Positions 3,001-43,035 of a stretch of 64,000 bases of DNA are shown here, in pieces (position 1 is the first letter of the stretch; every line of letters starts with the position of its first letter). The DNA is from Macrostomum lignano. Lineage: Eukaryota. The DNA lies in assembly GCA_002269645.1 (NCBI GenBank), contig NIVC01003003.1:1-64000 (forward strand), read 5' to 3'. A program made the position numbers and the translations under genes. The notes below the pieces were generated by a model, which was given only the letters and a program-made list of their open reading frames with translations, had not been told where the DNA came from and made no database searches.

Positions 3001-3531
3001 AGATCAAGCTCATAGCAATCATGAGATCAAGTTCATAACAGTCACGAGATCAAGCTCATAACAATCATGAGATCAAGCTCATAACAGTCACGAGATCAAG
3101 CTCATAACAGTCATGAGATCAAGCTCATAGCAATCATGAGATCAAGCTCATAGCAATCACGAGATCAAGCTCATAACAATCACGAGATCAAGCTCATAGC
3201 AATCATGAGATCAAGTTCATAACAGTCACGAGATCAAGCTCATAACAATCATGAGATCAAGCTCATAACAGTCATGAGATCAAGCTCATAACAGTCACGA
3301 GATCAAGCTCATAACAATCATGAGATCAAGCTCATAACAATCATGAGATCAAGCTCATAACAATCATGAGATCAAGCTCATAACAGTCATGAGATCAAGC
3401 TCATAACAGTCACGAGATCAAGCTCATAACAATCATGAGATCAAGCTCATATGAATCATGAGATCAAGCTCATAACAGTCACGAGATCAAGCTCATAACA
3501 ATCATGAGATCAAGCTCATATGAATCATGAG
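1..3531. repeat. 23-bp tandem satellite (GAGATCAAGCTCATAACAATCAT) with higher-order blocks; runs off the left edge
   Basis: Unit read directly; a variant block containing GAAGAGTGAAATC recurs at ~13, ~783 and ~2391. Confidence 0.97.
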
Positions 3532-3601
3532 TAAGCTTAAAGTAAGATTAAGATACGAGAAGGTCAAAGTAAAAGTACAAATTCGCATGCGTCAATTGCA
3601 G

Positions 3602-3706
3602 CAGCGGCCGAGTCATCGGACTCTGCGTTGGCGTGGTGCTGGGCTGCTGCGTCTGCGTCTACATCGCTGACCGATGCTACAAGGGCTACAAAAGGCACAA
3701 GAACAG
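3602..3706 (+). CDS. Internal exon of a single-pass membrane protein (TM helix plus basic stop-transfer segment)
   Basis: TTGCAG acceptor at 3601 (3604 also possible); translates SGRVIGLCVGVVLGCCVCVYIADRCYKGYKRHKN; donor AG|GTGCGT, phase 2. Confidence 0.7.
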
Positions 3707-4406
3707 GTGCGTAAAGTTCGTGAAGGTAGATTATATCATAAAACATTTTCTCGTGTTGAAGATGCTTAATGTTTCAAGCTTTTGGGAAACTATAGTGACA
3801 AAAATGAACCAGCTAAAGTTAGAGTTTACCGTTAAAGTTAATGTTAATAGTTTAGAAGATCACCTTCAATAGCTATAGTTTTCCTGTAAAATAACTGTCC
3901 TTGGGCCAAAATCGTCAGTTCTGTCGTGTACAACTGTACATGGCATGTACCTGGGTGTGATATTGCCCTCAACTGGCTCCATCCAATGTGTGAGCTAGGC
4001 TAGCGCTGAACAACGTCTAGTATGTTCATTGCATAGATTTTTCGCGCTACACTCCATACTTTCTACTTATCAATAGAGAAATTCTGACATGATGAATCAT
4101 TCGCACTCAATTTACCTGTGATACTAAAAAATGGGTCAAACTTCATGCAGGCATACCGAGACCGGTTTCTGGCTTGGTTTGCCTCTGTCAGTCGGCCATT
4201 ATCACACATCGTACTTTCCCACCACTCTGTGTGCACAGACGTTTCGTGACATCTTTGCGATATGTGATACATTCTACGATTCAAATCTTTATTTGTATAC
4301 TTTTCTCAGTAGTCATAATCGAATCTGACAATACCAACGGAGGTCAAAATCCGCCCAAGACTCAATCATGTGTACATGTAATATGCCATGTACACCTAAA
4401 TTTCAG

Positions 4407-4692
4407 CCAATCGCAAAGCGCCTCAGTATCCGTGGCGCACACCAATCCGGCGCTACAAATGTCAAACGTTCAAGTAGCAGAACCGATTGTTGTAGCCGCG
4501 GGTGGCCATGATAATCGGCCGACCTTGGCTCCAGCTTCAAATGACTTGATCAACAAGCCGACTGAGCAGCCGTTAAACTACTACGGACAGGAGCAGCAAC
4601 AGCCGCCACCATACCCGATTAATCTGTCGCAGCAGCCGCCGCCTCCGGCCTACTGGATGTCCAGTCCCAGCCAGGCTAAGACAACGCTTTGA
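4407..4692 (+). CDS. Terminal exon of the PPxY-motif membrane protein (Pro/Gln-rich cytoplasmic tail)
   Basis: TTTCAG acceptor, phase 2, matches the upstream donor (AG+C = Ser); tail has QPPPY and PPPPAY; TGA at 4690-4692. Confidence 0.72.
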
Positions 4693-5445
4693 CAACTTCA
4701 TTGATATTATCAGCTATCGTATATTTGATTGATAGTCGATTTCAGTAAAGTACCGGGCCAATTGGAAATAGTCTCCCGTTTATTTATGTCTATGGCCAAA
4801 ACAAAACAAATTTGCCATAGACAAATTCAGTCGAGAAAAATCCGATTAAACGTTCCTAATCAGCCTCTAGCTCATTTCTAAGAAAATCAAGTGTACCACC
4901 CTGCTACTGCAGTTGTCCGTGCGCCATGTACATGTACACCTACAGTAGTTCTCTGCGTGCTTTTTCTACCCTCTAAAAATCAAATTAATTTTTTGTTGTT
5001 TTATCAGAAACTAAGATAAACTAATCTGGCTGACTGTTAATCTAGTACTAGTGCACCGATATTTGAAATTAGCAATATGTACGATTGTATATGTACTTTG
5101 CACGTTTACCAGCGGCTTATCGGTTATTATGTACTTTAATCTCTGCTTGTACTTTAATATATAAAATAATTACAAAGCAAATTTTACCGTTCGATAGATT
5201 TGAACAATACAGCATTAATTACTAAGCATTCCTGAACAGAGAAAATAGAGCAAAATGTTTTTTTGCATTATATTTTATTATATTCAGATAATGCTTATAG
5301 CAAGCAAATAGTTAAACACACAAAGACCGCACAGGCTGCATAACTGACATTAAGAGAACAGAACAAGCTTATATACAAATAGACGGCGCATTACGGCAAA
5401 GGAGCACTGTTTGGGTGTCCAAACTATAGGGTTAATATTTATAAT

Positions 5446-6236
5446 TTATTTGAACTTGGCCAACTCTAGTAGCGATGCCCGCTGCGCATCCACCTGCAGT
5501 CCCTGTTCCGCTGTGCGCACCCGCTTCAACTGCGGCTCGGCCCGTAGCGCTGCCGATGCTTCAGCCGCCTGCTGCTCCTGTTCCTCCTCGCCGACAGAGC
5601 CGGGTCGCCGTCGCCGGCGCGGCTGCTCGTCAGCCGGCGCTAGCAGGTGTCGGTCCTCGCTGTAAGCCGGCAGTCGTCGATCGTCGGCCGGCTTAGCGGC
5701 GGAGCTGAGGAAACGCGACAGTACAAAACCGCGGCCGGAGCTGGCCGGCAGCGGCAGCTGGCCGCAAACTGTCGGATCCGAACGAACCGAGGCTGCACCG
5801 ACAGACGCCGACGCTGACGAAACGGCCGAATCGGCGCGACGTTTTGCCATCACGGAACGAAGTCTTGATTGAAGGTTGGCGCTGGGGCTTACTGTGGACT
5901 GCGGCGGAGGCGTGCCGAACAATTCGTCTAGAAGGTCCAACTCGTCATTGTTGGCATCGGCGGTCGCAGCAACTGGCGGAGCGGTCACAGCAGCAGCAGC
6001 GGGTGGCTGTCGATAAACTGGAGGCAGAGCGGCCGAGCTCCGCCCAGACCCGTCGCAGGTTTTAGTAAAGCTACTAGACGGCTCTGTGCCGCCAGCGTCG
6101 CCAGCTGGACAGTCGCGTTCAAACAGTGCGGCGACTAATTCGCCAGACTGAAAGTTCGGCGCCGAGGCAATGTCATGGCAGGCCAGGGCCGGCAGAGCAG
6201 AGTCGCTATTTGGACCCAGGCGCATCCAGCGGGCAT
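5446..6236 (-). CDS. USPL1: USPL1-like gene, exon 4 (end of the peptidase C98-like fold plus low-complexity tail)
   Basis: CTGTAG acceptor, phase 1 (A+AT = Asn) matches the exon 3 donor; ARWMRLGP...FQSGELVAALFER resembles recalled USPL1 GSWLECDD...VPASEIHIVIWER; stop at 5446. Confidence 0.75.
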
Positions 6237-7134
6237 CTACAGATTAATATATAGTGACAGATATCGGTCTGGTAGGGTTAAAATGGCACAGTTTAAGAGA
6301 AGCAGCTTGGGCTAAAAAGGAGACTAAATTCTGTTACCTGTTTTTAATATGAGCTAATTGTTGACTGTACCAATTACGTATGCTTAACTTTATTGACAGG
6401 TCAGACCAGATATTACCATAGAATATCGAGCGTAAACATAGAATGCCAACCTGTGGTGCCAGTGTAGAAGTCATTCGTTTTGTCTATGGTCGATAGCCAG
6501 ACTTACCCGACTTATCAATCAATTTCACCTCTAGATTGGCATTTTTATATTGACGCTTGATATACTGTTTATTGCTTGGCACATTTTTTAGTCACGAGAT
6601 TATTAGAGTGAGTGTAAAGGAAACCCAGACGGCATCAAAGGGAGCAAAAATTACTTATAATCTACGGTTTATTAACGAAACTGGATGCTTGCAGATAAGT
6701 CGGGTCGGAACTTACTTGAATTTCAACTTTTCAATGAGTTTTGTTGCACGCGATTAATGGCTAACTTTTCAAGACCATTTGTTCAGTGGGAGCCTGACTT
6801 AATCAAACTATATGTAGAGCAAGTAAGCAACTCATCAGGAAGGAGCATTTTACCTTAGTCGAACCTTCTTGAAGTTGATTCGCGAGCCGCCACCAAGCCG
6901 CACTGGCTCCTTCCTTTGTGCTTAATAATTATCATTCGCAACTATATAGCCGTAAAGTCAGTCTCTCACTGGGAAGACTCTTGATTTATAATGATTTTAG
7001 GCACCGCGTGGTTTTTAATTAGATCTTTTATACTTTATACAAGAATCGTTTTTTTAGTTTTAAAGGCAATAAAATTTTCTAATCCAAAATTATTTCTGTA
7101 GGCTGTAAAGTTCTCTTACAAAAAATGCTGGTAA

Positions 7135-9210
7135 GGCGTAAAGTCGGTTTCTGACTGGATTTTTTGGTATTATTAGCAAACCATAAAGTCGGTTTCTAAC
7201 TGGATATTTAGATAATGTTGGTAAGCCGCAAAGTCGGTTTCTGACTGGATATTTAGATAATGTTGGTAAGCCGTAAAGTCGGTTTCTGACTGGATATTTA
7301 GAAAATGTTGGTAAGCCGTAAAGTCGGTTTCTGACTGGATTTTTAGATAATGTTGGTAAGCCGTAAAGTCGGTTTCTGACTGGATTTTTAGATAATGTTG
7401 GTAAGCCGTAAAGTCGGTTTCTGACTGGATTTTTAGATAATGTTGGTAAGCCGTAAAGTCGGTTTCTGACTGGATTTTTAGATAATGTTGGTAAGCCGTA
7501 AAGTCGGTTTCTGACTGGATATTTAGATAATGTTGGTAAGCCGTAAAGTCGGTTTCTGACTGGATTTTTAGGTAATGTTGGTAAGCCGTAAAGTCGGTTT
7601 CTGACTGGATATTTAGATAATGTTGGTAAGCCGTAAAGTCGGTTTCTGACTGGATTTAGGTAATGTTGGTAAGCCGTAAAGTCGGTTTCTGACTGGATAT
7701 TTAGATAATGTTGGTAAGCCGTAAAGTCGGTTTCTGACTGGATATTTAGATAATGTTGGTAAGCCGTAAAGTCGGTTGCTGACTGGATATTTAGATAATG
7801 TTGGTAAGCCGTAAAGTCGGTTTCTGACTGGATATTTAGATAATGTTGGTAAGCCGTAAAGTCGGTTTCTGACTGGATTTTAGATAATGTTGGTAAGCCG
7901 TAAAGTCGGTTTCTGACTGGATATTTAGATAATGTTGGTAAGCCGTAAAGTCGGTTTCTGACTGGATTTTTAGGTAATGTTGGTAAGCCGTAAAGTCGGT
8001 TTCTGACTGGATATTTAGGACTAGGTAATGCTGGTAAGCCGTAAAGTCGATTTCTGACTGGATATTTAGGACTAGGTAATGCTGGTAAGCCGTAAAGTCG
8101 GTTTCTGACTGGATATTTAGATAATGTTGGTAAGCCGTAAAGTCGGTTTCTGACTGGATATTTAGATAATGTTGGTAAGCCGTAAAGTCGGTTTCTGACT
8201 GGATATTTAGATAATGTTGGTAAGCCGTAAAGTCGGTTTCTGACTGGATATTTAGATAATGTTGGTAAGCCGTAAAGTCGGTTTCTGACTGGATATTTAG
8301 ATAATGTTGGTAAGCCGTAAAGTCGGTTGCTGACTGGATATTTAGATAATGTTGGTAAGCCGTAAAGTCGGTTTCTGACTGGATATTTAGATAATGTTGG
8401 TAAGCTGTAAAGTCGGTTTCTGACTGGATTTTTAGGTAATGTTGGTAAGCCGTAAAGTCGGTTTCTGACTGGATATTTAGGACTAGGTAATGCTGGTAAG
8501 CCGTAAAGTCGATTTCTGACTGGATATTTAGGACTAGGTAATGCTGGTAAGCCGTAAAGTCAGTTTCTGACTGGATATTTAGGACTAGGTAATGCTGGTA
8601 AGCCGTAAAGTCGGTTTCTGACTGGATTTTTAGGTAATGTTGGAAAGCCGTAAAGTCGGTTTCTGACTGGATTTTTAGGTAATGCTGGTAAGCTGTAAAG
8701 TCGGTTTCTGACTGGATATTTAGGACTAGGTAATGCTGGTGAGCCGTAAAGTCGGTTTCTGACTGGATATTTAGGACTAGGTAATGCTGGTAAGCCGCAA
8801 AGTCGGTTTCTGACTGGATTTTTAGGACTAGGTAATGCTGGTAAGCCGTAAAGTCGGTTTCTGACTGGATTTTTAGGTAATGTTGGAAAGCCTCAAAGTC
8901 GGTTTCTGACTGGATTTTTAGGACTAGGTAATGCTGGTAAGCCGTAAAGTCGGTTTCTGACTGGATATTTAGGACTAGGTAATGCTGGTGAGCCGTAAAG
9001 TCGGTTTCTGACTGGATATTTAGGACTAGGTAATGCTGGTAAGCCGCAAAGTCGGTTTCTGACTGGATTTTTAGGACTAGGTAATGCTGGTAAGCCGTAA
9101 AGTCGGTTTCTGACTGGATTTTTAGGTAATGTTGGAAAGCCGCAAAGTCGGTTTCTGACTGGATTTTTAGGACTAGGTAATGCTGGTAAGCCGTAAAGTC
9201 GGTTTCTAGC
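7135..9210. repeat. 45/51-bp tandem satellite in USPL1-like intron 3
   Basis: Unit GTAAGCCGTAAAGTCGGTTTCTGACTGGATATTTAGATAATGTTG; the 51-bp form has a 6-bp insert (...TTAGGACTAGGTAATG...). Confidence 0.96.
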
Positions 9211-17575: not shown

Positions 17576-17800
17576 TCAGTGACAGTTTTGGCACTCTGGA
17601 TGGCACAGCCGTCCATTCAAGCGACACTTGCAGCCTCCGGAGGTGTCGCCTTTGCCGCCTGGGCCCCACCTGGGTCCCCGGGTAGCCCAGCAGATCTCGG
17701 TTTGGCACATCGAACAGGCCAGCCAGTCGCATCCCTCCTTCTTCTGCAGGAACACCTGGCAGTTCGGGCAGTTCATTGCCTCGCCGGATTTCACCATTTT
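17576..17800 (-). CDS. RBCK1: HOIL-1L/RBCK1 homolog, last exon (RING2 plus C-terminal Zn site)
   Basis: [54 protein letters not shown]...CHPECQNCH* closely matches the HOIL-1 C-terminus; catalytic Cys in GCDW present; phase-0 acceptor. Confidence 0.95.
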
Positions 17801-17877
17801 CTGCGGTGAATAAAAGCAATTGCTTTGTGTTGCTTTCATTAGACGAGTCTGAGCCCCGCCATGCGGCACCCGCTGAG

Positions 17878-18620
17878 CCGATCACTAATCTGCCTCATCT
17901 CATCTCACTAATCCTATCAGTTTTATCACACTAATCCGCCTCAGTCCCTCATCACTAATCCGCCTCAGTCCCCTATCACTAATCTGCCTCAGTCCCCTAT
18001 CACTAATCTGCCTCAGTCCCCTATCACTAATCCGCCTCAGTCCCCTATCACTAATCCGCCTCAGGCCCGTATCACTAATCTGCCTCAGTCCCCTATCACT
18101 AATCTGCCTCAGTCCCCTATCACTAATCCGCCTCAGGCCCGTATCACTAATCCGCCTCAGGCCCGTATCACTAATCCGCATCAGTCCCCTATCACCAATC
18201 CATTTCAGGCTTCTAGCTATTGCACTAATCCGTTTCAGGCTCCTATCACTAATCCGCCTCAGTCCCCTATCACTAATCCGCCTCAGGCCCCTATCACTAA
18301 TCCGCCTCAGGCCCCTATCACTAATCCGCCTCAGTCCCCTATCACTAATCCGCCTCAGGCCCCTATCACTAATCCGCCTCAGTCCCATATCACTAATCCG
18401 CCTCAGTCTCATATAACTAATCCGCCTCAGGCCCCTATCACTAATCCGCCTCAGTCCCCTATCACTAATCCGCCTCAGGCCCCTATCACTAATCCGCCCC
18501 AGGCCCCTATCACTAATCCGCCTCAGGCCCCTATCACTAATCCGCCTCAGGTCCCTATCACTAATCCGCCTCAGGCCCCTATCACTTATCCGCCTCAGGC
18601 CCCTATCACTAATCCACCTC
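17878..18620. repeat. 24-bp minisatellite filling the last RBCK1 intron
   Basis: Unit CACTAATCCGCCTCAGKCCCCTAT. Confidence 0.95.
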
Positions 18621-18651
18621 AGGCCCCTGTCCCAGCCGCAGCAGCGCTCAC

Positions 18652-19197
18652 CTCCAGGTGCGTCAGATTGAGCTGGGCCTCCTTATTATTCTTAGCGTCA
18701 ATCCTCAGCTGGTTCTGGTATCGCCGACAGCTGACGCCCGGATGCGAGGCCCGACACGTGACGCAGTTGTGCAGGCCGCACAGCATGCACTCGAAGCTGT
18801 TAACATCTTCGGCCAGCTCAACGAAGGCGTCGCAGTTAGGCGCCACGCAGTGGAACGTGTTGGGTATGACAGCTTCGGCTTGTCGAAGGCCCAACCGTTG
18901 CAACCGGTCGAATTCTTGACTGGTTAGCAACTGGTTGGCCTCCGAATCGGTCACCGTCTGCTGGCACTGATCGTGCGGACAGCGGACTGGCATGGAGTCG
19001 GCGTGGAGCAGGTGCTGGCGCAGGCACTCTCGGCACACCTCGTGGCCGCAGTCGCGCAATTGAATGCCGTCCGCATCGCACTCTGCCGATACGTCCGTGA
19101 TGCAGATCGGGCATTCGAAATCTTGCTTGGCCGGAATTAATGAACAGTTTGCCAAGGCCAGGTGCGCACTGAGATTGCGACTGCGCTGGCGCTCTTG
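18652..19197 (-). CDS. RBCK1: RBCK1 homolog, RING1-IBR exon
   Basis: CACAG|CAA acceptor and GAG|GTGAGC donor, both phase 0; FECPIC...LRDCGHEVCRECL...CPHDQC and FHCVAPNC...CMLCGLHNCVTCRASH motifs. Confidence 0.93.
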
Positions 19198-19371
19198 CTG
19201 TGTTTGGTAATGCATGATGAGTGTTGGCATTGTTGTTGGCATTTGCTGTTTGACAGAGTGCAACGGTAATATAAATCTTTATTACATGGCATTGTGTGAT
19301 ATAGCAAAGCCACATTGCTGGCTTTGAGTCAAGCGTGTTGAATTTGCCTAATTTTTTGCCTAATTTGCCAC

Positions 19372-19800
19372 ATTGTGTCACTGATGAAACTGAGCCTCAA
19401 AATGTGTCACTGATAAAACTGAGCCTCAAATTGTGTCACTAATGAAAGTGAGCCTCAAAATGTGTCACTAATTCATTGTGCCTCAAATTGCGTCACTGAT
19501 AAAAACTGAGCCTCAAATTGTGTCACTGATGAAAGTGAGCCTCAAAATGTGTCACTAATTCATTGTGCCTCAAATTGCGTCACTGATAAAAACTGAGCCT
19601 CAAATTGTGTCACTGATGAAAGTGAGCCTCAAAATGTGTCACTAATTCATTGTGCCTCAAATTGCGTCACTGATAAAAACTGAGCCTCAAATTGTGTCAC
19701 TGATGAAAGTGAGCCTCAAAATGTGTCACTAATTCATTGTGCCTCAAATTGCGTCACTGATAAAAACTGAGACTCAAATTGTGTCACTGGTGAACTGAGC
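19372..19800. repeat. ~29-bp minisatellite with an 87-bp three-unit higher-order repeat
   Basis: TGTGTCACTAATTCATT recurs at 19461, 19548 and 19635. Confidence 0.9.
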
Positions 19801-20694
19801 TAATGAGTTTACAAATGAACTAAACTGATCTTGATTTGTCATCGAGGGACTGACTGAGCTTCACTATCAGTGAACGGGTCGTTAAATGACCTACTTGAAA
19901 AGCAATTGTTTTCAACAGGACTTTGTCTTTATCATGACTTCTGCATCATGTGCTTCTGTAATCTATAGCCCTTTAAAACTGAAATAGCAAGCCCTCGCGA
20001 GAATCGTTTAGACTGAGTTAAACATGAGTTGCTCATTGCCCAGAATTCGAAAAAACGTGATTATTGGTTTATAATTCTTATAACAGTCGTTTGAATGTCG
20101 TGTATTCGCAGTTAGGGTTAAAGGTGTTGTTAAAGATTATAGCTGGTGAAAAAGCAATATTTGTTCCAAAGTCTTTCAGACCAAAAATGGCGCTTATAAA
20201 TAAAATATATTTGTAAGCGAATTAATGCATACTGTATAAGCTGTCAAGTGTTGAACCGAAAACAAATAAATTAGAGCAACAGCAACAAAAAGAGAGTTTA
20301 TGGTTGCTTAATGTCTACAAAGTTTAGAGACAAATGTCGGGGCGGGGCATATTTTCATGCAAAATGCAAAAACAATCAGCTTAAATCTAATTATTTGCCA
20401 ATATAGCTGTTTTATTACCAATTTAAGCCAACTCACTGGTCACAGCAGAGGGAATACATCAAAATTGATACATCAAAACAGAATAATTTCTGTACACGAG
20501 TAGTGGCTCGTATATTAACAAATGCGATGCTTGCTGTTTAAGGCTTCGCGAGGCGAATTTGCTCGACACGAGAGGAAAAATGGAGGGGGCTGGCACAATC
20601 AGCTGTGGGATAATCCGGTAAGAATATGCACACTGAAATATAAGGACTGTATTTGCAAAACAGGACTTTATTATATCTATTTTACATATCAATA

Positions 20695-21648
20695 TCTATG
20701 ATGCGGGGCCCAGACATCTCACATCTATCTATGATGCTGGGGCCAGCCAGACATCTCACCCCTATCTATGATGCGGGGCCCAGACATCTCACATCTATCT
20801 ATGATGCGGGGCCCAGACATCTCACCCCTATCTATGATGCAGGGCCCAGACATCTCACATCTATCTATGATGCGGGGCCCAGACATCTCACCCCAATCTA
20901 TGATGCAGGGCCCAGACATCTCACCCCTATCTATGATGCAGGGCCCAGACATCTCACATCTATCTATGATGCAGGGGCCAGCCAGACATCTCACCCCTAT
21001 CTATGATGCAGGGGCCAGCCAGACATCTCACCCCTATCTATGATGCAGGGGCCAGACATCTCACATCTATCTATGATGCAGGGGCCAGCCAGACATCTCA
21101 CCCCTATCTATGATGCAGGGGCCAGCCAGACATCTCACCCCTATCTATGATGCAGGGCCCAGACATCTCACATCTATCTATGATGCAGGGGCCAGCCAGA
21201 CATCTCACCCCTATCTATGATGCAGGGGCCAGCCAGACAACTCACCCCTATCTATGATGCAGGGGCCAGACATCTCACATCTATCTATGATGCAGGGGCC
21301 AGCCAGACATCTCACCCCTATCTATGATGCAGGGGCCAGCCAGACATCTCACCCCTATCTATGATGCAGGGCCCAGACATCTCACATCTATCTATGATGC
21401 AGGGGCCAGCCAGACATCTCACCCCTATCTATGATGCAGGGCATAGACATCTCACCCCTATCTATGATGCAGGGCATAGACATCTGACCCCAATATCTAT
21501 GATGCAGGGCATAGACATCTGACCCCAATATCTATGATGCAGGGCATAGACATCTGACCCCAATATCTATGATGCAGGGCATAGACATCTGACCCCAATA
21601 TCTATGATGCAGGGCATAAACATCTGACCCCAATATCTATGACATAGA
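20695..21648. repeat. ~33-38-bp minisatellite in an RBCK1 intron
   Basis: Unit CTATCTATGATGCAGGGGCCAGCCAGACATCTCACCC and shorter variants. Confidence 0.95.
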
Positions 21649-21951
21649 CATGTCACCTCAATATATGTAATGTAGGATTTATACACCTCACCCTGCCCTT
21701 CAAATTTACAAGCAACCAAGGAAACATATAGATGTAAAAAGACATATAGTCTGGGAAGCAAAACAGATAAGCATGATTAGCACAAAAGTTAAGGTCGATT
21801 TTTCTAACCGACAATAAAAACAATAAAGGCAGTAGTACTAATAGCATATTAGGATAAAAATTTACAACGAACCCAAAAGACTTTGGCGCCAATATATAAA
21901 AACAAAATGAAAGTCTAGAAGAAATTAAAATGAAACACAAAAAAACTAAAG

Positions 21952-23325
21952 TTAACCGTCACTGCCATGCCTCTTTATAAGATGTTGAAGCCGCTCTTGA
22001 TCGGCTTTGTTTCGAATAGCCATAGATCTGGCGCGAAGAGCGTCCATTGCTCGGTCAAAAAATGCATCCTCATCGTCTTCTTTGTCTTCTTCTGCTAGTT
22101 GTGCTGCTTCTGCAGGACCGGAAGCAACGCTGGCATAGAGTTCACTCTCATCTTTGCTGCCCTGTTCATCCGTTTCCACAGGCGGGCTGGCCGTTTTGCC
22201 AGCTCCGAATTGAATGACCCGGCGCGGCTTGGGCTCGATTCGAATCGGCTTCCAGACTGGCGGCGGCGACGGCGAGTTCGAAGCCGGCCTAGCGCGATCA
22301 ATCGTCGGCTTCGGTGGCTTCGGCGGAGGCGGCGGCGGCGGCGGACGAGGCAGTCCGCCGGTACTTGGCAACCGATTTATTGTTGGCGGAGGCGGCTGCG
22401 GCGGCGGCTTCGACGGCGGCAACGGTTTTTGGCGCAGATTCTGACGCAAGGATGCCAGAATGGAACTGGCAGATGGCAGATTCTGACGCTTTTTTGGCAG
22501 TTTCGAACTGGCAGACGACAGATTCTGACTCTGGGTTGGCAGAATCGAACTGGCAGACGGTAGATTTTGATGCTGGGTTGGCAGTTTCGAACTTGCAGAT
22601 GGTAGATTCTGACGCTGGGTTGGCAGATTCGAACTTGCAGACGACAGATTCTGACTCTGGGTTGACAGATTCGAACTTGCAGACGGTAGATTCTGACGCT
22701 GGGTTGGCATATTCGAACTTGCAGACGGCAGATTCTGACTCTGGGTTGGCAGATTCGAACTGGCAGACGGCAGATTCTGACTCTGGGTTGGCAGATTCGA
22801 ACTGGCAGACGGCAGATTCTGACTCTGGGTTGGCAGATTCGACAAATTTTTATTGCAACGAGGCGGCAGTCGTGGAAGTGCAGTTTTCCCCGACGGCAAC
22901 GAAGGCAGCGGCCTCATTGATCTGGCTCTGTCGCGGCTTTGTGCGTCTTTGCTCTGCTGCTGCTGCTGCTGTTGTTGTTGTTGATGCCGGCCCCGCTGGG
23001 TCACCTGGTCAATGGGCCTACGGGAACGGTCTGACTGCAACATGGCACAGCCAGCCGTCAATGCCCCGCTCACCATAGGACAGGGGCCTTGCACCACCGC
23101 GTCGCCGCGTGAGTGTGCAGAGGGCATGTCGGTGAGCCTGCCACCAGGTCCACCAGGGTCAACCCCAGCAGAGGGGCCGGAATTCCAGCTTTCGTGTCCG
23201 TGGCCAACGGACCTTCCACCCCACGCCTGACAGTCCAGCACTGGCGGCCAGCCCCGATGGGGTCTAGCCAGTGTCTGGAGCTGCTCGGAGGCCTGCTGGA
23301 TGTGAGGCTGCTGCTGCTGCTGCTG
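21952..23325 (-). CDS. Large Gln/Pro-rich exon inside RBCK1, probably alternative; open to its own stop codon
   Basis: Strong acceptor TTTTTTTGTCTTTTAG, phase 0, in frame with the NZF exon; ~457 open codons with polyQ, 14-aa repeats, PPPPPPKPPKP and an acidic stretch; TAA at 21952; no phase-0 GT donor near its end. Confidence 0.65.
   Translation of the reverse strand, partial: QQQQQQPHIQQASEQLQTLARPHRGWPPVLDCQAWGGRSVGHGHESWNSGPSAGVDPGGPGGRLTDMPSAHSRGDAVVQGPCPMVSGALTAGCAMLQSDRSRRPIDQVTQRGRHQQQQQQQQQQSKDAQSRDRARSMRPLPSLPSGKTALPRLPPRCNKNLSNLPTQSQNLPSASSNLPTQSQNLPSASSNLPTQSQNLPSASSNMPTQRQNLPSASSNLSTQSQNLSSASSNLPTQRQNLPSASSKLPTQHQNLPSASSILPTQSQNLSSASSKLPKKRQNLPSASSILASLRQNLRQKPLPPSKPPPQPPPPTINRLPSTGGLPRPPPPPPPPKPPKPTIDRARPASNSPSPPPVWKPIRIEPKPRRVIQFGAGKTASPPVETDEQGSKDESELYASVASGPAEAAQLAEEDKEDDEDAFFDRAMDALRARSMAIRNKADQERLQHLIKRHGSDG
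22435..22842. repeat. 42-bp coding minisatellite (NLPSASSNLPTQSQ, ~9-10 copies)
   Basis: The in-frame 14-aa repeat is visible in ORF 21952..23241. Confidence 0.9.
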
Positions 23326-24127
23326 CTAAAAGACAAAAAAAGAAATTAACAAGAAAATGTGTTTCGTTTCAGCAACAATAGCAAAGTTGCTGTCGGATTA
23401 TATTGTTAAAATTTTAGATAGATAATTGAAATGGCCTATTGGAATCTGAGACTATTGCTGATAACTACTCATTAGCAGTAGTAGATTATTAATAGCAGTA
23501 TTGCAAAAGCGGCCAATTAGGCAAAGGATATTGTTATAAAACTTGTGTAGAACAACACGCAAATTCATTAAACTTTTAGCAAACAGAAGAAGCTGCACTT
23601 TAACTTGCCAGCCAGCAACCTATGAAAAGATTGCAGTTATTAGAGCTGTTATTAATTTGTAGAAAAAACATAAACAATATTAGTATACTGTACTCAGAAG
23701 CTTATCTGATAGTTAAAATTCTGTTAGATTCTTAGAAAGCTCAAGTGAACTCTCCAGTGCACTTGTACAGTGAAACAATTTTACTAATTTGTATGTAGAT
23801 GTCAAAATATACCAATCAATGGACATTTGAATGTCTATGAAGTTTCTATCCGTACCAATCACGTAAAAATCTGAATCTGAGCTTTTTATGCAGCTGACAT
23901 GAGTGGAAAATTTCAAAATTAAACATAATACCTTAATACCTCTAATCTACCCTTTACCCTTTATTGATGCTTTAAATAAAATATGGATTACAGAAACCAT
24001 GGAGCCTAAAAAAATAACATTTAGTTTGAAAAAAACAGGGTACCAATTTGGCAATCGGGGTCCAAATTCAGAAGGCCAAAACTACGTGTCATGACGTACA
24101 CTGCTAAAGAAACCTAGATCTGAACAC

Positions 24128-24937
24128 AGTGTCTCATATCAGTGTGAATGTCTCATATCAGTGTGAATGTCTCATATCAGTGTGAATGTCTCATATCAGT
24201 GTGAATGTGTCTCATATCAGTGTGAATGTGTCTCATATCAGTGTGAATGTGTCTCATATCAGTGTGAATGTGTCTCATATCAGTGTGAATGTGTCCCATA
24301 TCGGTGTGAATGTGTCTCATATCAGTGTGAATGTGTCCCATATCAGTGTGAATGTGTCTCATATCAGTGTGAATGTGTCCCATATCAGTGTGAATGTGTC
24401 TCATATCAGTGAATGTGTCCCATATCAGTGTGAATGTCTCATATCAGTGTGAATGTCTCATATCAGTGTGAATGTGTCTCATATCAGTGTGAATGTCTCA
24501 TATCAGTGTGAATGTCTCATAACAGTGTGAATGTCTCATATCAGTGTGAATGTCTCATATCAGTGTGAATGTCTCATATCAGTGTGAATGTCTCATATCA
24601 GTGTGAATGTCCCATATCAGTGTGAATGTCTCATATCAGTGTGAATACGTCCCATATCAGTGTGAATGTGTCTCATATCAGTGTGAATGTCTCATATCAG
24701 TGTGAATGTGTCTCATATCAGTGTGAATGTCGCACATTAGTGTGAATGTCTCATATCAGTGTGAATGTCTCATATCAGTGTGAATGTCCCATATCAGTGT
24801 GAATGTCTCATATCAATGTGAATGTCCCATATCAGTGTGAATGTCTCATATCAGTGTGAATGTCTCATATCAGTGTGAATGTCTCATATCAGTGTGAATG
24901 CGTCCCATATCAGTGTGAATGCGTCCCATATCAGTGT
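24128..24937. repeat. 19/21-bp minisatellite in an RBCK1 intron
   Basis: Unit GTCTCATATCAGTGTGAAT(GT). Confidence 0.95.
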
Positions 24938-24980
24938 AAACCAGGTCAATAATGAGTGAAAACTGAAAATCTTCACTCAC

Positions 24981-25139
24981 CTGCTCCAGAAACTCCCGCT
25001 CCAGCTGCAGCCGCCGCGCTTCATCTTCGGCTTCAACAACCGGTTCGTAGCCGGGTGGCGGCTCTCCTGAGCAAATCTCGCAGCCCAGCCGACTCGGCTT
25101 GTTGCGAAAAGTGCAAGTCGGACAGTCCCAGCCTGGCGG
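24981..25139 (-). CDS. RBCK1: RBCK1 homolog, NZF zinc-finger exon (not in the ORF track)
   Basis: PPGWDCPTCTFRNKPSRLGCEICSGEPPPGYEPVVEAEDEARRLQLEREFLEQ; TCACAG acceptor and CAG|GTGAGT donor, 159 nt, phase 0/0. Confidence 0.93.
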
Positions 25140-25249
25140 CTGTGAATTCGTTCAGATATGACGCTTGATTGCAGATTATCGATCGCTTTTATAAGTACAT
25201 TTTACATAATGGCAAAAGAGAAATAGCAATAGAGAAATGACAACCGAAT

Positions 25250-25889
25250 CCAGAGACATGGCAAATGGATTCTCAGAGACATGGCAACTGGATTCACAGA
25301 GACATGGCAAATGGATTCTCAGAGACATGGCAACTGGATTCACAGAGACATGGCAAATGGATTCTCAGAGACATGACAAATGGATTCTCAGAGACATGGC
25401 AAATGGATTCTCAGAGACATGGCAACTGGATTCACAGAGACATGGCAAATGGATTCTCAGAGACATGGCAACTGGATTCTCAGAGACACGGCAAATGTAA
25501 TCTCAGAGACATGGCAAATGGATTCTCAGAGACATGGCAACTGGATTCACAGAGACATGGCAAATGGATTCTCAGAGACATGGCAACTGGATTCTCAGAG
25601 ACATGGCAAATGGATTCTCAGAGACATGGCAAATGGATTCTCAGAGACATGGCAACTGGATTCTCAGAGACATGGCAACTGGATTCTCAGAGACATGGCA
25701 ACTGGATTCTCAGAGACATGGCAACTGGATTCTCAGAGACATGGCAACTGGATTCTCAGAGACATGGCAACTGGATTCTCAGAGACATGGCAACTGGATT
25801 CTCAGAGACATGGCAAATGGATTCTCAGAGACATGGCAACTGGATTCACAGAGACATGGCAAATGGATTCTCAGAGACATGGCAACTGG
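25250..25889. repeat. 23-bp minisatellite filling RBCK1 intron 1
   Basis: Unit GAGACATGGCAAMTGGATTCTCA. Confidence 0.95.
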
Positions 25890-25968
25890 ATTTTTAGAGG
25901 GTTAGGATTCCCTACAAAGAAAAGGAGAGAACAGTTCCAGCCACAATAGCACTCTGCAGGTCACTTAC

Positions 25969-26574
25969 ACTACTATCAGAAGGAGGTGGCGGACAGGATT
26001 GCACAGGATTAACCAGCTCAAATCTGTTGCAATTTCCCTTGGCGTCGCAGACAGCTTCTTTTAGGCTTCGCAGCTCGGCAGGCGGCGGTCGCCAGTCGCC
26101 AACAGCTCGCACGTAGACTCGAACCAGCAGCCGTGACGCCGGTAGCCTGCTAGTGCAGCCAGCCAAGGTTTCTGACTCGGCTGCCAGTCCATTCAGTGGC
26201 GCCTCGTCTGGCGGTATCTCTTGGCCAACTATGCAGGTTTGCAGGCGAGTCGGGATGTCGAATCTAAGCAGCAGTTCGCGCTTTAAATCGGCGATGGTGA
26301 CGGGGACAGAATCAACAACGGTCGGCATGGCCAGGTGAAGCGGCTGGCTGACGCGGGCGCATCTGGTCTGCAGTACTATGCTGACTAGTTGAACAGCTTC
26401 AATAGACGATGCTAGCGAGCCATTGTCTGGATCGGGATACACTTGGACACCAGCGGCGGGTCCGGAGCAGAGCTGCTCAACTATTTGGCCAGCCTCAGCC
26501 TCATCACCAGCCAGCACAGCCGACTGAAGGCGGCCGGCCAACTGCTGCTGACGGTGGCGCCAACTGTCCGACAT
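25969..26574 (-). CDS. RBCK1: RBCK1 homolog, first coding exon (LTM plus UBL domain)
   Basis: LAGRLQSAVLAGDEAEAGQIVEQL resembles the LUBAC-tethering motif; TIADLKRELLLRFDIPTRLQTCIVGQ is UBL-like; donor AGT|GTAAGT, phase 0; ATG at 26574 is inferred. Confidence 0.85.
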
Positions 26575-28862
26575 TGGGCCGGGCAGACAAACACTGCAGG
26601 GGGGGGGGGGGGCGTCAAGCCAAACGGAGAAATTATACACAAATAGCCATTGGCTGAGGGCAGTATTGTCATAATGTGAAAGTCAGATGCATTTATTGCC
26701 AAACTGCTCCTATCCCCAATTAGTCATCTAACCCCAAGGCATAGAGATTCCTATAATGGTTGTAGGACAATGTCACCAAAGGCAATGCACCAAGGTATTT
26801 TATATTTATATTTATATTTATATCACTTATTGACTGATAACTAGCTGCAAATTGTGATTTATAATATGATAGCAGTATGGAATCAATATTACTTGTTTTA
26901 GTAAATTTAGTCAACAAAATGCAAGGTTAAATTAACTAAATATAAGAATGCTCTAAGTAGCCATTGCCAAAGTTTAATAATTGATTATAGAATTTCAAAC
27001 TAAATTATCATATTTTGGCCTTAGAATTTGATGTTTAACATTGAAATAACTTTTAATAGCCTGTCTTATAGAGTTATTATATAATTTAACAAAATAAATA
27101 GGGTAAATAAGAGGGAAAAAGAGGGAAAAGAGAAAAAAGGGCAATAGAAAAAGAAGACAAAAAATTGCAACTAGACTATTAGAATGAAAACTAGATAGAT
27201 ACTGATAAACCATTTTTAATATATTGATTTAGTAAAGGTAAAAGTTACAATTGAAGCTAAGTTTCTTTTTGTTAAAATCAGATATAAATTAGGCACCAAA
27301 GAAGTATAATTTATATTTTTATAAAATTGATCATATACCTATATAGATAAATATAAGCTAGATAGAGACAAATAATTTTAATATAGTTTATATTTTAAAG
27401 TATTATAAAGTATATATAATAACTATATATTTTAAGCAATTAAGAGTAATAAGACTATATATTTTTACCAATAGCCAATACAAATCATAATTCTCATTTA
27501 TTTAATTGTTTTAAACATTTTAGATAAAAAAAAGTATGATAGGGGCCTAGTCTTTTTTCAACTTAACTTGAAATTTTCCCTTTCAGTCTAAACTTTATTG
27601 ATTAGGCCTAATAAAAATACTAAAACTAAATCCTATTGGATATTAGATATTATTTAAGATACTAGATATTAGATTTAGTATACTAGTAGGCCCCTAATCT
27701 AAAAAAATTTCCCTGCCTTAATGGCCTAATCTAGTTTTAGATAGATTAGCAAACTTTAGACTTAGGTCTAGGACTAGATAAAACCCAATAATCTTATCAT
27801 AAGCACTGGTGCAATTTCAGTTTTGGGGAATTCATCAAAAAAACTAAATTTGATAGATATGCCTATTCTAAGAAAAAAAGAGAGCGCATCTAGTAAAAAA
27901 TATATAAAACTCTGCAACTGCAAAGTGATATATAGCAGCAATGTCAATGAACCAAAAGTCATAGACAACTGACAACACTAACAGGCTCTAGTCTAGAAGT
28001 TATATAGGTAGGTTTATCTAGCAATGCGAATTGCAGCAAGTTTACTGAATCTGGCAACTAGTACTGAATAAGAGTGAACTTAGGTCGTTTTAGGATGTAT
28101 GTATTTCATCCTGACCTGCCTAAATGTACAGGTCAGTAATGCCGATAACAATATACAATACCGTGTAGATAGCAGACTTAGAGTTGACAAGGTCCAAGGC
28201 CACTTTAATTATGTCTAGAAGCATATTCACCACACAGTCCACTACCCACGTGACCTATAAACTAAGTTGTTAATTGTTTCATGGATATAGCTAATAGAAA
28301 TTAGGCCTAAGCAGAGTTTTCTAGTCGTCACAGGGCGGCAGTATTTAGGGAAAAAGTCTAAGTGTGCCCATCTTGGTTCAATAAAAGCTGTGATTTCTAT
28401 AGCTCTGTCTTTTGTTTTATTGGTATATAGAAGCCCCAGCTTAAATTCTGATCTTTTCAATCACTGAAATCAGTAGTAGATCACTGCATAATCATCTATC
28501 AGCCTGATAAATAAAATTTTCTTGGAAACATACATATTTTTACGGTCGGTCTCGGGTTCAGCCGTCTTATCAGTTGCTCCCTGTAACGGTTGCTGCAATA
28601 AACGCATGCACAAGCAAGATGCGATAACTGAGCAACATGTCTACCAGCTTGCCGACACTATTAAAGCTGCAGTATCGTCTAGAAAAGGCCGACCTAATGA
28701 TGATCCTGGTTCCCAGTGACGGCGTCCCGCAATCTCTTGGTGCTCCCCCAGACGGTCTTCTGGCGGAGCATGTGCAGGATGACCGCGCCCAGTGGCACCT
28801 TGCATTCAGCAGACCATTTAGGGCCGCTTATAATGACCGTTACGTCGCAAATGACGCCACTG

Positions 28863-30452: not shown

Positions 30453-30577
30453 GTAAAGCCCTATGCTGCACATTATCGTAACTACAATTATAACTAATAA
30501 AATACGTAAGTAATTTTTTTCCCTGACCCAACCTTCTTGACTGAACTCATCCAGTGACCCTCCTGTGATTGAGACCT

Positions 30578-31020
30578 ATCCTCCACTGACTGGGGATACT
30601 CACCCTCCACTGACTGGGGATACTCACCCTCCACTGACTGGGGATACCCACCCTCCACTGACTGGGGATACTCACTCTCCACTGACTGGGGATACCCACC
30701 CTCCACTGACTGGGGATACCCACCCTCCACTGACTGGGGATACTCACCCTCCACTGACTGGGGATACCCACCCTCCACTGACTGGGGATACTCACCCTCC
30801 ACTGACTGGGGATACTCACCCTTACCCTCCACTGACTGGGGATACCCACCCTCCACTGACTGGGGATACCCACCCTCCACTGACTGGGGATACCCACCCT
30901 CCACTGACTGGGGATACCCACCCTCCACTGACTGGGGATACCCACCCTCCACTGACTGGGGATACTCACCCTCCACTGACTGGGGATACCCACCCTCCAC
31001 TGACTGGGGATACTCAACCT
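30578..31020. repeat. 24-bp minisatellite, SLC22 intron 1
   Basis: Unit CCTCCACTGACTGGGGATACYCAC. Confidence 0.95.
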
Positions 31021-31131
31021 CTATCGACTTGAATTTCACTAACAATACGCTCGTACAAGCTCACAAGAACACGCAACATAAATTCTAAAGTAAACTCCCA
31101 CACCTTGATGCTCCCTTCCCCCTGCATTCAG

Positions 31132-41464: not shown

Positions 41465-42430
41465 TTTTGTGAAGTTTGGAGATTGTGAAGTTTAGGGATT
41501 GCGAAGCTTGGGGATTGTGGATCTTGGGGATTGTGAAGATTGGAGATTGTGAAGCTAATGGATTGTGAAGCTAATGGATTGTGAAGCTAATGGATTGTGA
41601 AGCTAATGGATTGTGAAGCTAATGGATTGTGAAGCTAATGGATTGTGAAGCTTGGAGATTGTGAAGATTGGAGATTGTGAAGCTTGGGGATTGTGAAGCT
41701 TTGGGATTGTGAAGCTTGGGGATTGTGAAGCTTGGGGATTGTGAAGCTTGGGGATTGTGAAGCTTGGGGATTGTGAAGCTTGGGGATTGTGAAGCTTGGG
41801 GATTGTGAAGCTTGGGGATTGTGAAGCTTGGGGATTGTGAAGCTTGGGGATTGTGAAGCTTGGGGATTGTGAAGCTTGGGGATTGTGAAGCTTGGGGATT
41901 GTGAAGCTTGGGGATTGTGAAGCTTGGGGATTGTGAAGCTTGGGGATTGTGAAGCTTGGGGATTGTGAAGCTTGGGGATTGTGAAGCTTGGGGATTGTGA
42001 AGCTTGGGGATTGTGAAGCTTGGGGATTGTGAAGCTTGGGGATTGTGAAGCTTGGGGATTGTGAAGATTGGAGATTATGAAGCTTGGGGATTGTGAAGAT
42101 TGGGGATTGGGAGGCTTGGAGATTGTGAAGCTTGGGGATTGTGAAGCTTGGGGATTGTGAAGCTTGGGGATTGTGAAGCTTGGGGATTGTGAAGCTTGGG
42201 GATTGTGAAGCTTGGGGATTGTGAAGCTTGGGGATTGTGAAGCTTGGGGATTGTGAAGCTTGGGGATTGTGAAGCTTGGGGATTGTGAAGATTGGGGATT
42301 GGGAGGCTTGGAGATTCTGGAGATTGGTGATTGGGAGGCTTTGGGATTGTGAAGATTGGGGATTGTGAAGCATGGATTGGGAAGTTTGGGCATTGGTGAA
42401 GTTGGATGTCAATGGGGATTGTGAAATCTG
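41465..42430. repeat. 16-bp minisatellite
   Basis: Unit GAAGCTTGGGGATTGT. Confidence 0.96.
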
Positions 42431-43035
42431 GAGAGTTTGAGCCAGTTTCACAGCTGGTGACAGTCAGCTTTGCATTTCGATCTTGTAAACAATAATAATA
42501 AGCAGAAGCTTTTTCTGTCAGTGCTTACTTCTAAAAGTCAAAGCAGCAATCAGCAATTTTGTCCGTCAGGCCTCAGCCAGAATTCCAACTACAAAGGCCA
42601 ATAATTACCGGTCCCAGGTACTCGTAAAAGGGGAGTTTATCAAACGTGTTTAAGTCAGACAATTTCAAGATCTGTGAAGAAATATTCTGGAAAAAGAAGG
42701 TCGACAATGCTCATAATTGCAACATAATCGCACAGTTTATTGCACCAATTATAGTCCGTAAATTTTGGTTCAGCCGGCTATAGCAAAATCTGCGACAATT
42801 ATCGCCTAATCTGCAACAAAGGCACTGACGCATCCAATGCCAAATTTTCTGGCCTTGGACAATTTTCGCAAAATTACAGTAAATTACATAATGCTCCAAT
42901 TATTTTGTTTGCGGCAATCAGCATCTTCTGCGGGGGATAAATTGCTTCTATTTTGCAATTGTTCCAATCATTCTTTTCCTTAGGGGTGACGTCTAAAAGC
43001 AAGGAAAGTTGCCTTTTCAATATTGGTCAATGTCC

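Follow-up and report, generated by a model that had tools for sequence, protein, structure and literature searches.

An Open Frame in an Intron of the Macrostomum lignano HOIL-1 Gene Shows No Sign of Conservation as a Coding Exon

The stretch of DNA analysed here (the window, 64,000 nucleotides) belongs to the Macrostomum lignano contig NIVC01003003.1 and carries on its minus strand an ordinary HOIL-1/RBCK1 orthologue, with four coding exons that specify 511 residues in the domain order LTM-UBL-NZF-RING1-IBR-RING2. Intron 2 of this gene contains an unannotated open frame, X (23325–21952, minus strand, 1,374 nt), for which a role as an alternative terminal exon of a SHARPIN-like isoform without ligase had been proposed in an earlier note on this DNA. 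We see no sign that X is a conserved coding exon, and the SHARPIN-like isoform is thus unproven and probably unimportant; the evidence bearing on such an isoform as a functional product is indirect and leans against it. In the reading that we place first, although with as much doubt as confidence, X is a young, unconstrained intronic open frame and most likely no constrained coding exon of HOIL-1.

The mRNA annotated in GenBank starts at 26593, directly 3' of C14-TGCAG, and the partial coding sequences begin with VCLPGPM and CLPGPM, which are the first complete codons past the AG at this position. The pattern of the sequence suggests that this AG is probably the spliced-leader (SL) trans-splice acceptor of the HOIL-1 mRNA. 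Exon 1 (26574–25969; this and all following features lie on the minus strand) starts with the ATG at 26574, encodes the LTM helices and the UBL in 202 codons, and ends at a GTAAGT donor. Exon 2 (25139–24981) encodes the NZF zinc finger and the start of the tail helix, and its end in phase 0 at EREFLEQ, as read in the earlier note, is confirmed; the donor that follows is CAG/GTGAGT (the slash marks the splice junction). Exon 3 (19197–18652) comprises the linker, RING1, and IBR and has 0 substitutions relative to either of the other genomic copies, and exon 4 (17800–17576) encodes RING2 with a HOIL-1-type C terminus (PDB 9egv, 2.7e-36) and ends with the TGA at 17578–17576. All junctions of the gene are in phase 0, and a minisatellite is present in every intron. 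The direct join of NZF to RING1, from 24981 to 19197 over the 5.8-kb intron 2, reads EREFLEQ/QERQRSRN; it is used by three GenBank models (PAA53909, PAA76215, and PAA76243) and is spanned by the alignment with human HOIL-1 (PDB 8eaz, E 2.7e-68), so that its earlier description as canonical holds.

The identity of the gene, also as previously assigned, is borne out by matches in all parts of the protein (8eaz for the RBR, PF00641 for the NZF, and 5y3t for the LTM-UBL). The RBR is of the HOIL-1 type, with residues 241–511 matching 8eaz (E 2.7e-68; 1.2e-18 in a Foldseek search with the window protein) and RING2 matching 9egv (2.7e-36), and all of its zinc-ligand cysteines are invariant in the HOIL-1 alignment (A1). 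The NZF is recognized by Pfam PF00641 (E 4.3e-7, 29.5 bits with a cut-off of 27) and by PDB 3b08_B (1.3e-8), and it is followed in the AF2 model by a helix, residues 244–277, that is predicted to be continuous. A single sequence gives only a weak Pfam match to the LTM (E 0.29). A profile built solely from Macrostomum sequences matches the LTM-UBL chain of HOIL-1L (5y3t_A, E 1.8e-7, positions 13–133), as well as that of SHARPIN (5y3t_C, E 2.5e-7). The AF2 model of the N terminus consists of helices at 8–42 and a β-grasp fold, and Foldseek places it close to 5y3t_A (1.6e-5) and 4dbg_A (TM 0.65). The PH domain of SHARPIN (PF16764), carried by many vertebrate and amphioxus relatives, has no Pfam match in the window protein.

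This gene, HOIL-1 A, is present in the genome in three near-identical copies, one in the window and two elsewhere (L001 and L003), each with one GenBank model, and HOIL-1 also occurs as a paralogue family (paralogue B) whose protein is 45% identical to that of A. Directly upstream of paralogue B, outside the window, lies a separate, transcript-supported LTM-UBL-NZF gene that has no RBR (BOX15_Mlig004010g1, P0277, hereafter Mlig004010). Its LTM, UBL, and NZF align to the N terminus of HOIL-1 A and B, and its tail, which contains a 4E-BP-like eIF4E-binding motif, is not similar to X. The earlier note suggested checking the genome for a separate SHARPIN; given this RBR-less LTM-UBL-NZF gene, a single gene need not supply both subunits.

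X is open, as had been claimed, throughout 457 codons from its phase-0 acceptor to a TAA. It is open from the first base past TTTTAG, and the acceptor AG itself belongs to the in-frame TAG that closes the frame upstream. The frame is intact in three of the three genomic copies, with lengths of 457, 425, and 439 residues, and most of it is simple sequence (a CAG run, a proline run, and a 42-bp minisatellite), beside a 336-bp insert and about 100 unique codons. The insert (23307–22972, 112 codons), bordered by CAG/CAA runs, is specific to the window copy and absent from L001 and L003, and its first 57 residues recur unchanged at the C-terminal end of the UniProt fragment A0A1I8HIF7. The minisatellite (22842–22434) comprises 9.7 copies of a 42-bp unit that encodes the 14 residues NLPTQSQNLPSASS; two of its three frames are open, its unit variants are distributed over codon positions as 4/4/5, and the number of units varies among the genomic copies (8, 14, and 15). 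The non-repeat C-terminal part (22503–21955) contains a proline run, an acidic patch, and a putative helix, DAFFDRAMDALRARSMAIRNKADQERLQHLIKRHG, before the stop; it differs from each other copy by 4 substitutions and by indels of 6 and 3 bp, none of which shifts the frame. An internal ATG at 22917 (MRPLPS...) is common to the copies, and in L001 and L003, which have no insert, an ATG is found 57–60 nt past the acceptor. No Pfam domain was found in X, and none of the three copies has a gene annotated at this position. None of the three transcript-guided GenBank models includes X, an absence that weighs little, since transcripts overlapping repeats were left out of the M. lignano annotation (PMC5730564).

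The openness of X exceeds chance, and the evidence for this is moderate. The whole of X was open in 0 of 5000 dinucleotide shuffles, its C-terminal part was open in the frame of X in 0.9% of shuffles, and the 663 nt of non-repeat sequence common to all copies were open in that frame in 0.2% and in any of the six frames in 2.6%. Open frames of 150–611 residues made by repeats are frequent across the 64-kb window. The acceptor at 23325, described in the earlier note as very strong, does rank 2nd of 622 AG sites by pyrimidine count. The three real cis acceptors of HOIL-1, however, rank 47th, 216th, and 273rd, and no exon starts at the site with the top rank, so that pyrimidine richness is not diagnostic here. 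The statement that X has no in-frame GT donor proved wrong for the window copy, which has 11 phase-0 GTs. Two of them are good matches to a donor, namely ATG/GTGAGC (exon end 23074, score 8.6) and CAG/GTGACC (exon end 23005, score 6.9), to be compared with 7.0–12.2 for the real donors of the gene; both lie within the 336-bp insert, and no good phase-0 donor was found in X of L001 or L003.

The evolutionary pattern of X is that of an intron. Relative to L001 and L003, X has 5 substitutions per 708 nt in each comparison, whereas the canonical exons have 1 and 0 per 1536 nt (Fisher p 0.014 and 0.003, respectively), and unique intron sequence, with 18 and 29 per 2091 nt, does not differ significantly from X. 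Between copies, X thus changes as fast as the intron does, about 10 times as fast as the canonical exons. The ratio of synonymous to non-synonymous changes is 8:16, compatible with the synonymous fraction of 0.25 expected under neutrality (p 0.24), and GC3 is approximately 0.52, compared with 0.67–0.88 in the M. lignano coding sequences that served as reference. In the insert as in the C-terminal part, frame 0 has the best codon-usage score. Constraint on the reading frame was not detected, and the sole point in its favour comes from the small indels: those of non-repeat X are of 6 and 3 bp only, whereas those in the neighbouring unique intron are mostly of 1, 2, and 5 bp. Disordered tails, however, may evolve almost neutrally and yet be expressed. 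Among 1.84 billion representative proteins, X has no homologue apart from the 57-residue identity to a fragmentary model, all other matches being confined to the repeat region. No product containing X was found in the protein collection, and the equivalent intron of paralogue B has no X-like open frame.

According to the preferred reading, the HOIL-1 pre-mRNA is normally joined from 24981 to 19197 across intron 2 and is probably SL-trans-spliced at 26593, and X would be a young, lineage-specific island within that intron, open, GC-rich, and mostly of low complexity, on which no selection at the protein level is detected. Any use of its AG would be expected to give minor or neutral transcripts rather than a dedicated second subunit of LUBAC. 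The structure of the gene, the open frame with its three copies, and its evolutionary pattern are direct results; we infer that X adds little or nothing to the proteome.

The proposal that X is an alternative 3'-terminal exon, in which the NZF donor at 24981 would be cis-spliced to 23325 and poly(A) added after 21952, appears unlikely. The product, LTM-UBL-NZF followed by a disordered tail of 425–457 residues, would lack the RBR and serve as a SHARPIN-like subunit of LUBAC or as a dominant regulator. The part of the protein that such an isoform would keep is real, a phase-0 donor precedes a phase-0 acceptor and an open frame that ends in TAA, L001 and L003 likewise have an in-phase acceptor and a frame closed by a stop, and the frame is kept in the three copies. 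Where a pre-mRNA carries a donor upstream of an acceptor, cis use of that acceptor is, in principle, expected (PMC8629364), and mammals provide a precedent in RBCK2, an RBR-less splice variant of RBCK1. On the other side stand the three transcript-guided models that skip X, its intron-like divergence and neutral codon pattern, its lack of a homologue and absence from paralogue B, the existence of Mlig004010, the failure of pyrimidine richness to predict the real acceptors, and the first 112 codons of X, which differ between copies. In addition, neither AATAAA nor ATTAAA occurs within 1.2 kb past the stop of X, where TATAAA is found at +268, although this test has low power, since the first AATAAA of the canonical 3' end is itself only at +1023. 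The fuller version of the proposal, with X as a genuine recent terminal exon that makes of HOIL-1 A an LTM-UBL-NZF protein with no RBR but a long disordered tail, joining or antagonizing LUBAC, and thus as an independent, splice-based route, at an early and nearly neutral stage, to proteins of the SHARPIN or RBCK2 type, is very improbable. A ligase-less isoform made through X is probably of low importance.

Slightly less likely than cis-splicing to a terminal exon is that X is a separate, nested gene, an orphan within the HOIL-1 intron, encoding a Pro/Ser/Gln-rich protein unrelated to LUBAC, with translation starting either at a phase-0 AUG gained by SL trans-splicing to the AG at 23325 or at the ATG at 22917. 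The M. lignano SL ends with TTGCATG, i.e., in ATG (PMC8629364), and 30–39% of the genes are trans-spliced (PMC8629364; PMC5730564; 38.8% in the latter) at acceptors with the motif [T/C]TNCAG, richer in pyrimidine than the cis CAG (PMC8629364; PMC5730564). The AUG of a flatworm SL is able to act as the initiator, according to Cheng et al. 2006 as listed in PMC5832876. X, being open from the very first base past its AG, is in phase with the terminal AUG of the SL, so that its phase-0 start would suit an SL-donated AUG equally well as cis-splicing from the NZF exon. Its pyrimidine-rich acceptor is closer in character to the probable trans-splice site at 26593 than to the cis acceptors of HOIL-1, and the ATG shortly past the acceptor in the two insert-less copies fits as well. 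However, the acceptor is TAG/CAG and not exactly [T/C]TNCAG, the upstream cis donor should favour cis-splicing (PMC8629364), a gene is annotated at X in none of the three copies, and X has no homologue and evolves in a neutral pattern.

The least credible alternative, limited to the window copy, is that part of X (23325–23074 or 23325–23005) is an in-frame cassette exon. Spliced to the phase-0 acceptor of RING1, it would separate RING1 from the NZF tail helix by 84 or 107 added residues. The scores of its two phase-0 donor-like sites are in keeping with those of the real donors, but both sites lie in the insert missing from the other two copies; PAA53909, the model for this very contig, has no such insertion, and the predicted continuous helix 244–277 would be broken.

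A real and functional isoform would illustrate how a ligase-less adaptor can arise from a ligase gene through the gain of a terminal exon, one plausible path to proteins of the SHARPIN type, and would offer a flatworm model for the regulation of LUBAC through the choice of isoform. On present evidence, HOIL-1 at this locus is a normal gene, one intron of which contains a repeat-rich open frame that is not constrained. As RBCK2 is documented in mammals and an RBR-less paralogue exists as a gene of its own in M. lignano, the consequences for the field would be small. For the M. lignano genome, the locus serves as a caution that minisatellites and simple repeats create many long open frames and that pyrimidine-rich AGs are no marker of real cis acceptors.

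Comparison of the window protein with human HOIL-1L/RBCK1 (PDB 8eaz, 7yui, 5y3t, and 3b08) reveals the same order of domains, LTM-UBL-NZF-helix-RING1-IBR-RING2, an RBR that is about 41–52% identical, and a HOIL-1-type C terminus with a conserved CHP.C.NCH. In turn, the N-terminal half of the M. lignano protein is very divergent, to the extent that a search with a single sequence misses the LTM and UBL, and its gene is probably SL-trans-spliced and present as three near-identical copies, as well as a 45%-identical paralogue family. RBCK2, which lacks the RBR and inhibits RBCK1 (Tatematsu et al. 2008, as cited in PMC8245127), would be the closest counterpart of X if X were a terminal exon, each being a ligase-less N-terminal fragment of HOIL-1 that could inhibit full-length HOIL-1 or compete with it. 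RBCK2, however, is experimentally documented, whereas the isoform with X is hypothetical; the variant-specific parts are unrelated in sequence, and the tail encoded by X is 425–457 residues of low complexity. SHARPIN (PH-LTM-UBL-NZF) shares with the hypothetical isoform an LTM-UBL-NZF without an RBR, but its PH domain (PF16764) is missing from the window protein, and its NZF is C-terminal, whereas in the isoform a long tail would follow the NZF. Mlig004010, from the same species, has the very architecture proposed for the isoform, although it is an independent gene whose eIF4E-motif tail is dissimilar to X. Finally, X resembles the flatworm mRNAs that use an SL AUG (Cheng et al. 2006, as cited in PMC5832876) in being open in phase 0 straight after a pyrimidine-rich AG, and differs from them in that its putative site lies in an intron with a cis donor upstream.

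The gene that contains the open frame considered here, HOIL-1 A, is an orthologue of HOIL-1/RBCK1. Its canonical exons, all on the minus strand and joined in phase 0 with GT/AG borders, comprise exon 1 (26574-25969), the NZF exon (25139-24981), the RING1-IBR exon (19197-18652), and the RING2 exon (17800-17576). When spliced, they reproduce the Macrostomum lignano entries PAA53909.1 and PAA76243.1, except for 5-6 additional N-terminal residues in the GenBank versions, and differ from PAA76215.1 by one residue; all three entries are labelled "hypothetical proteins". The corresponding contig in assembly Mlig_3_7 (NIVC01003003.1) equals the window in every base across the entire gene, with coincident coordinates. 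The RBR of human HOIL-1 (PDB 8eaz) is matched with E 2.7e-68 in an alignment that runs unbroken over the junction between 24981 and 19197, Pfam recognizes IBR and RanBP-type NZF domains in the window protein, and a Macrostomum-only profile matches the LTM-UBL chains of HOIL-1L (E 1.8e-7) and SHARPIN (E 2.5e-7) in 5y3t. The AlphaFold model of HOIL-1 A (mean pLDDT 68.8) contains two N-terminal helices, a beta-grasp domain, an NZF, and an RBR, with an unbroken helix 244-277 spanning the exon junction, and Foldseek matched this model to 8eaz, 7yui, 5y3t, and 4dbg. Thus, the gene call, the exon phases, and the canonical splice from NZF to RING1 proposed in the earlier note are borne out by sequence identity, by PDB, Pfam, and profile matches, and by the AlphaFold and Foldseek results. 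The annotated HOIL-1 coding sequences start on the first codons past a C14-TGCAG acceptor (26593-26610, minus strand), which suggests that the HOIL-1 mRNA may itself be trans-spliced to a spliced leader (SL) at 26593. In that case, the AUG of the leader would not share the frame of the true ATG at 26574 and, from the sequence inspected by eye, would open an upstream ORF of ~29 codons overlapping this ATG.

Intron 2 of HOIL-1 A, downstream of the NZF exon, contains the unannotated frame X (23325-21952, minus strand). The observation of X in the earlier note is largely correct: a phase-0 frame of 457 open codons followed by TAA was verified, and the putative acceptor itself supplies, with its TAG, the in-frame stop that bounds it upstream. 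From the acceptor onward, X runs through (CAG)6, a segment of 336 bp (23307-22972), another stretch of CAA/CAG, and 38 unique codons; these are followed by a minisatellite (22842-22434) with 9.7 units of 42 bp that encodes NLPTQSQNLPSASS, by a series of prolines, and by ~100 unique codons that close with an acidic patch and a helix-like segment. The predicted product of X includes VWKPIRIEPKPRR...HLIKRHGSDG. None of 5000 dinucleotide shuffles left X fully open, and the 663 nt of non-repeat X common to all copies, shuffled with the parts in correct register, were open in the frame of X in 0.2% of cases, a share that rises to 2.6% when all six frames are counted. The openness of X exceeds chance, if not overwhelmingly. 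The stretch is stop-poor in several frames, a further sign of which is an antisense frame of 254 aa (22314-23078, plus strand) that spans the repeat region. Minisatellites are present in every HOIL-1 intron (17929-18628, 19394-19794, 20693-21642, 24130-24937, and 25251-25899), with units of 24, 87, 33/70/107, 19, and 23 bp in at most 41 copies, and their copy numbers vary among the genomic copies of the locus. Repeat-derived ORFs of 150-611 aa occur all over the window, including 59920-61755 (plus strand), 41603-42451 (minus), and 30494-31045 (minus), and some window minisatellites are open in several frames simultaneously; such ORFs are a base-rate caution for ORF-based claims in the M. lignano genome.

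Two statements made previously about the splice signals of X require revision. X was said to have no in-frame GT donor; it contains 11 phase-0 GTs, and the sites ATG/GTGAGC (exon end 23074) and CAG/GTGACC (exon end 23005) have donor scores inside the range of the real donors of the gene. The acceptor, described as very strong, is indeed pyrimidine-rich and ranks 2nd among 622 AG sites across the gene region. Pyrimidine content nevertheless fails to identify cis acceptors here, since the three real ones of HOIL-1 rank 47th, 216th, and 273rd and the top-ranked AG is no exon start. A scan for polyadenylation signals over the 1.2 kb past the stop of X found neither AATAAA nor ATTAAA and just one TATAAA, at +268; it had little power, given that the canonical 3' end of HOIL-1 has its first AATAAA as far away as +1023.

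A word-indexed protein search with X gave no matches, candidates probably having been swamped by low-complexity words. When 1.84 billion representative proteins were searched exhaustively, X had no relative other than a 57-aa identity to A0A1I8HIF7, and all remaining matches were to the repeat region. Pfam assigned no family to X, its parts, or A0A1I8HIF7, and an exact look-up of the ATG-started ORF of X found none on record in the protein collection. With no related protein in that collection, X as a transposon or a duplicated piece of an annotated gene was rejected, the copy-specific insert excepted. The collection also holds no X-containing product, an absence that is uninformative on RNA, since no Logan-derived match (assembled from sequencing runs) was seen for the HOIL-1 locus. 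The supplements of PMC5816591 mention neither the three locus names nor RBCK1. In the family of the paralogue HOIL-1 B (protein cluster P0002, 45% identical), the equivalent intron has no comparable ORF. UniProt models of HOIL-1 B (cluster P0025) include a 60-aa insert at the same junction that maps to two short patches of that intron; this insert is missing from the GenBank models and is unrelated to X.

The DV1 genome is partially duplicated (PMC5730564), and the assembly holds three copies of the HOIL-1 A locus, that of the window and the near-identical L001 and L003. X is intact in all of them (457, 425, and 439 aa), with a common acceptor context and stop. The 336-bp segment, flanked by CAG/CAA runs, is present solely in the window copy, and its first 57 residues are 100% identical to the C-terminal end of A0A1I8HIF7, a UniProt fragment from an older assembly; the fragment is named "Nuclear transcription factor Y subunit", and its N-terminal 95 aa are absent from the window and from every retrieved locus. 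The segment looks like an insertion inside the CAG run, and it could come from another locus or be an oddity of that older assembly.

Relative to the window copy, the canonical exons (1536 nt) have one difference in L001 and none in L003, unique intron sequence (2091 nt) has 18 and 29, and non-repeat X (708 nt) has five in each. Non-repeat X diverges significantly more than the canonical exons (Fisher p 0.014 for L001 and 0.003 for L003), and its divergence is not significantly different from that of unique intron sequence. Its changes are 4 synonymous and 7 non-synonymous; the distinct variants of the 42-bp unit are distributed 4/4/5 over the codon positions, with 4 synonymous and 9 non-synonymous, and the pooled 8:16 ratio gives p 0.24 when the synonymous fraction expected under neutrality is 0.25. 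GC3 is ~0.52 in X versus 0.67-0.88 in the coding sequences used for reference. Across the four parts of X, a small codon model trained on ~4 kb of coding sequence weakly prefers frame 0 in two only; two parts had begun out of register and had their frame labels reassigned by reasoning with scores unchanged. Favouring coding, the small indels in non-repeat X are of 6 and 3 bp only, against 1, 2, and 5 bp in the neighbouring unique intron; the larger length changes, in CAG runs and 42-bp units, keep the frame automatically. The canonical exons of the copies show 0-1 differences per 1536 nt while introns differ by ~1%, and no synonymous differences were seen among them against ~4 expected per comparison in a rough by-hand estimate; this sameness may reflect gene conversion, strong selection on codons, or less frequent mutation in exons.

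We give an even chance to X being an unconstrained intronic ORF island that yields minor transcripts at most. Its use to any appreciable extent as an alternative terminal exon, cis-spliced from the NZF exon, is unlikely; all three GenBank models leave X out, which is weak evidence, since the annotation deliberately dropped repeat-overlapping transcripts and alternative transcripts with the same CDS (PMC5730564). The phase-0 start of X fits such cis-splicing, and an AUG donated by the SL accounts for it just as well, as would be the case if X were a nested orphan gene, trans-spliced with the AUG of the leader in frame. Such a nested gene we regard as improbable. The AUG of a flatworm SL is reportedly able to initiate translation, a result attributed to Cheng et al. 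in 2006, and, with X open straight after its AG, an AUG from the leader would be in frame. The acceptor of X is pyrimidine-rich, like the site at 26593, and 30-39% of M. lignano genes are trans-spliced to a leader with a terminal AUG (PMC5730564, PMC8629364), although an acceptor with an upstream cis donor is expected to be cis-spliced (PMC8629364). A cassette exon formed by part of X in the window copy only, where the donor-like sites at 23074 and 23005 both lie inside the 336-bp segment, is very unlikely.

The earlier note had interpreted X as a possible source of an RBR-less, SHARPIN-like LTM-UBL-NZF subunit of LUBAC, the complex of HOIL-1L, SHARPIN, and HOIP. Indirect evidence leans against this interpretation, and we see only a slim chance that an X-terminal isoform is a functional LUBAC component. 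The check for a separate SHARPIN-like gene, suggested at that time, identified BOX15_Mlig004010g1 (3490-7273, plus strand, in locus L002 on contig NIVC01003120.1, outside the window), a transcript-based model of 393 aa with an LTM (27.3 bits), a weak UBL, and an NZF, and without an RBR; the second subunit thus need not come from HOIL-1 A. This gene adjoins HOIL-1 B, directly upstream, and is found neither in the window nor beside the HOIL-1 A copies, and the tail of its protein has no similarity to X. There are probably two or more genomic copies of the pair, as a 39,082-bp contig is the source of one member of P0277, the cluster of BOX15_Mlig004010g1, and of one member of P0002. The NZF exon of BOX15_Mlig004010g1 runs on into a putative 4E-BP-like eIF4E-binding module, in which TGSGGRRICYSRDFLLSLQNCPLAAGKPGDLPR aligns to human 4E-BP1 (PDB 5bxv_B, E 0.003; Pfam PF05456, E 1.7e-4), and the residues that come next, PVAGVTSQ, resemble IPGVTSP of 4E-BP1. 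A LUBAC-type adaptor fused to such a motif would combine domains in an unusual way.

Among other animals, proteins of ~700 aa from fish, birds, reptiles, and amphioxus (clusters P0005, P0014, P0024, P0036, and others) combine a PH domain of the SHARPIN type (PF16764) with LTM, NZF, and a HOIL-1-type RBR, and some of them carry the name "sharpin". The many such proteins in vertebrates and amphioxus suggest that the ancestral form was PH-LTM-UBL-NZF-RBR, with mammalian SHARPIN as an RBR-less derivative. An RBR-less variant of HOIL-1, RBCK2, is already known in mammals (Tatematsu et al. 2008, cited in PMC8245127), so that even a favourable outcome for X would provide another example of known RBR-less variants.
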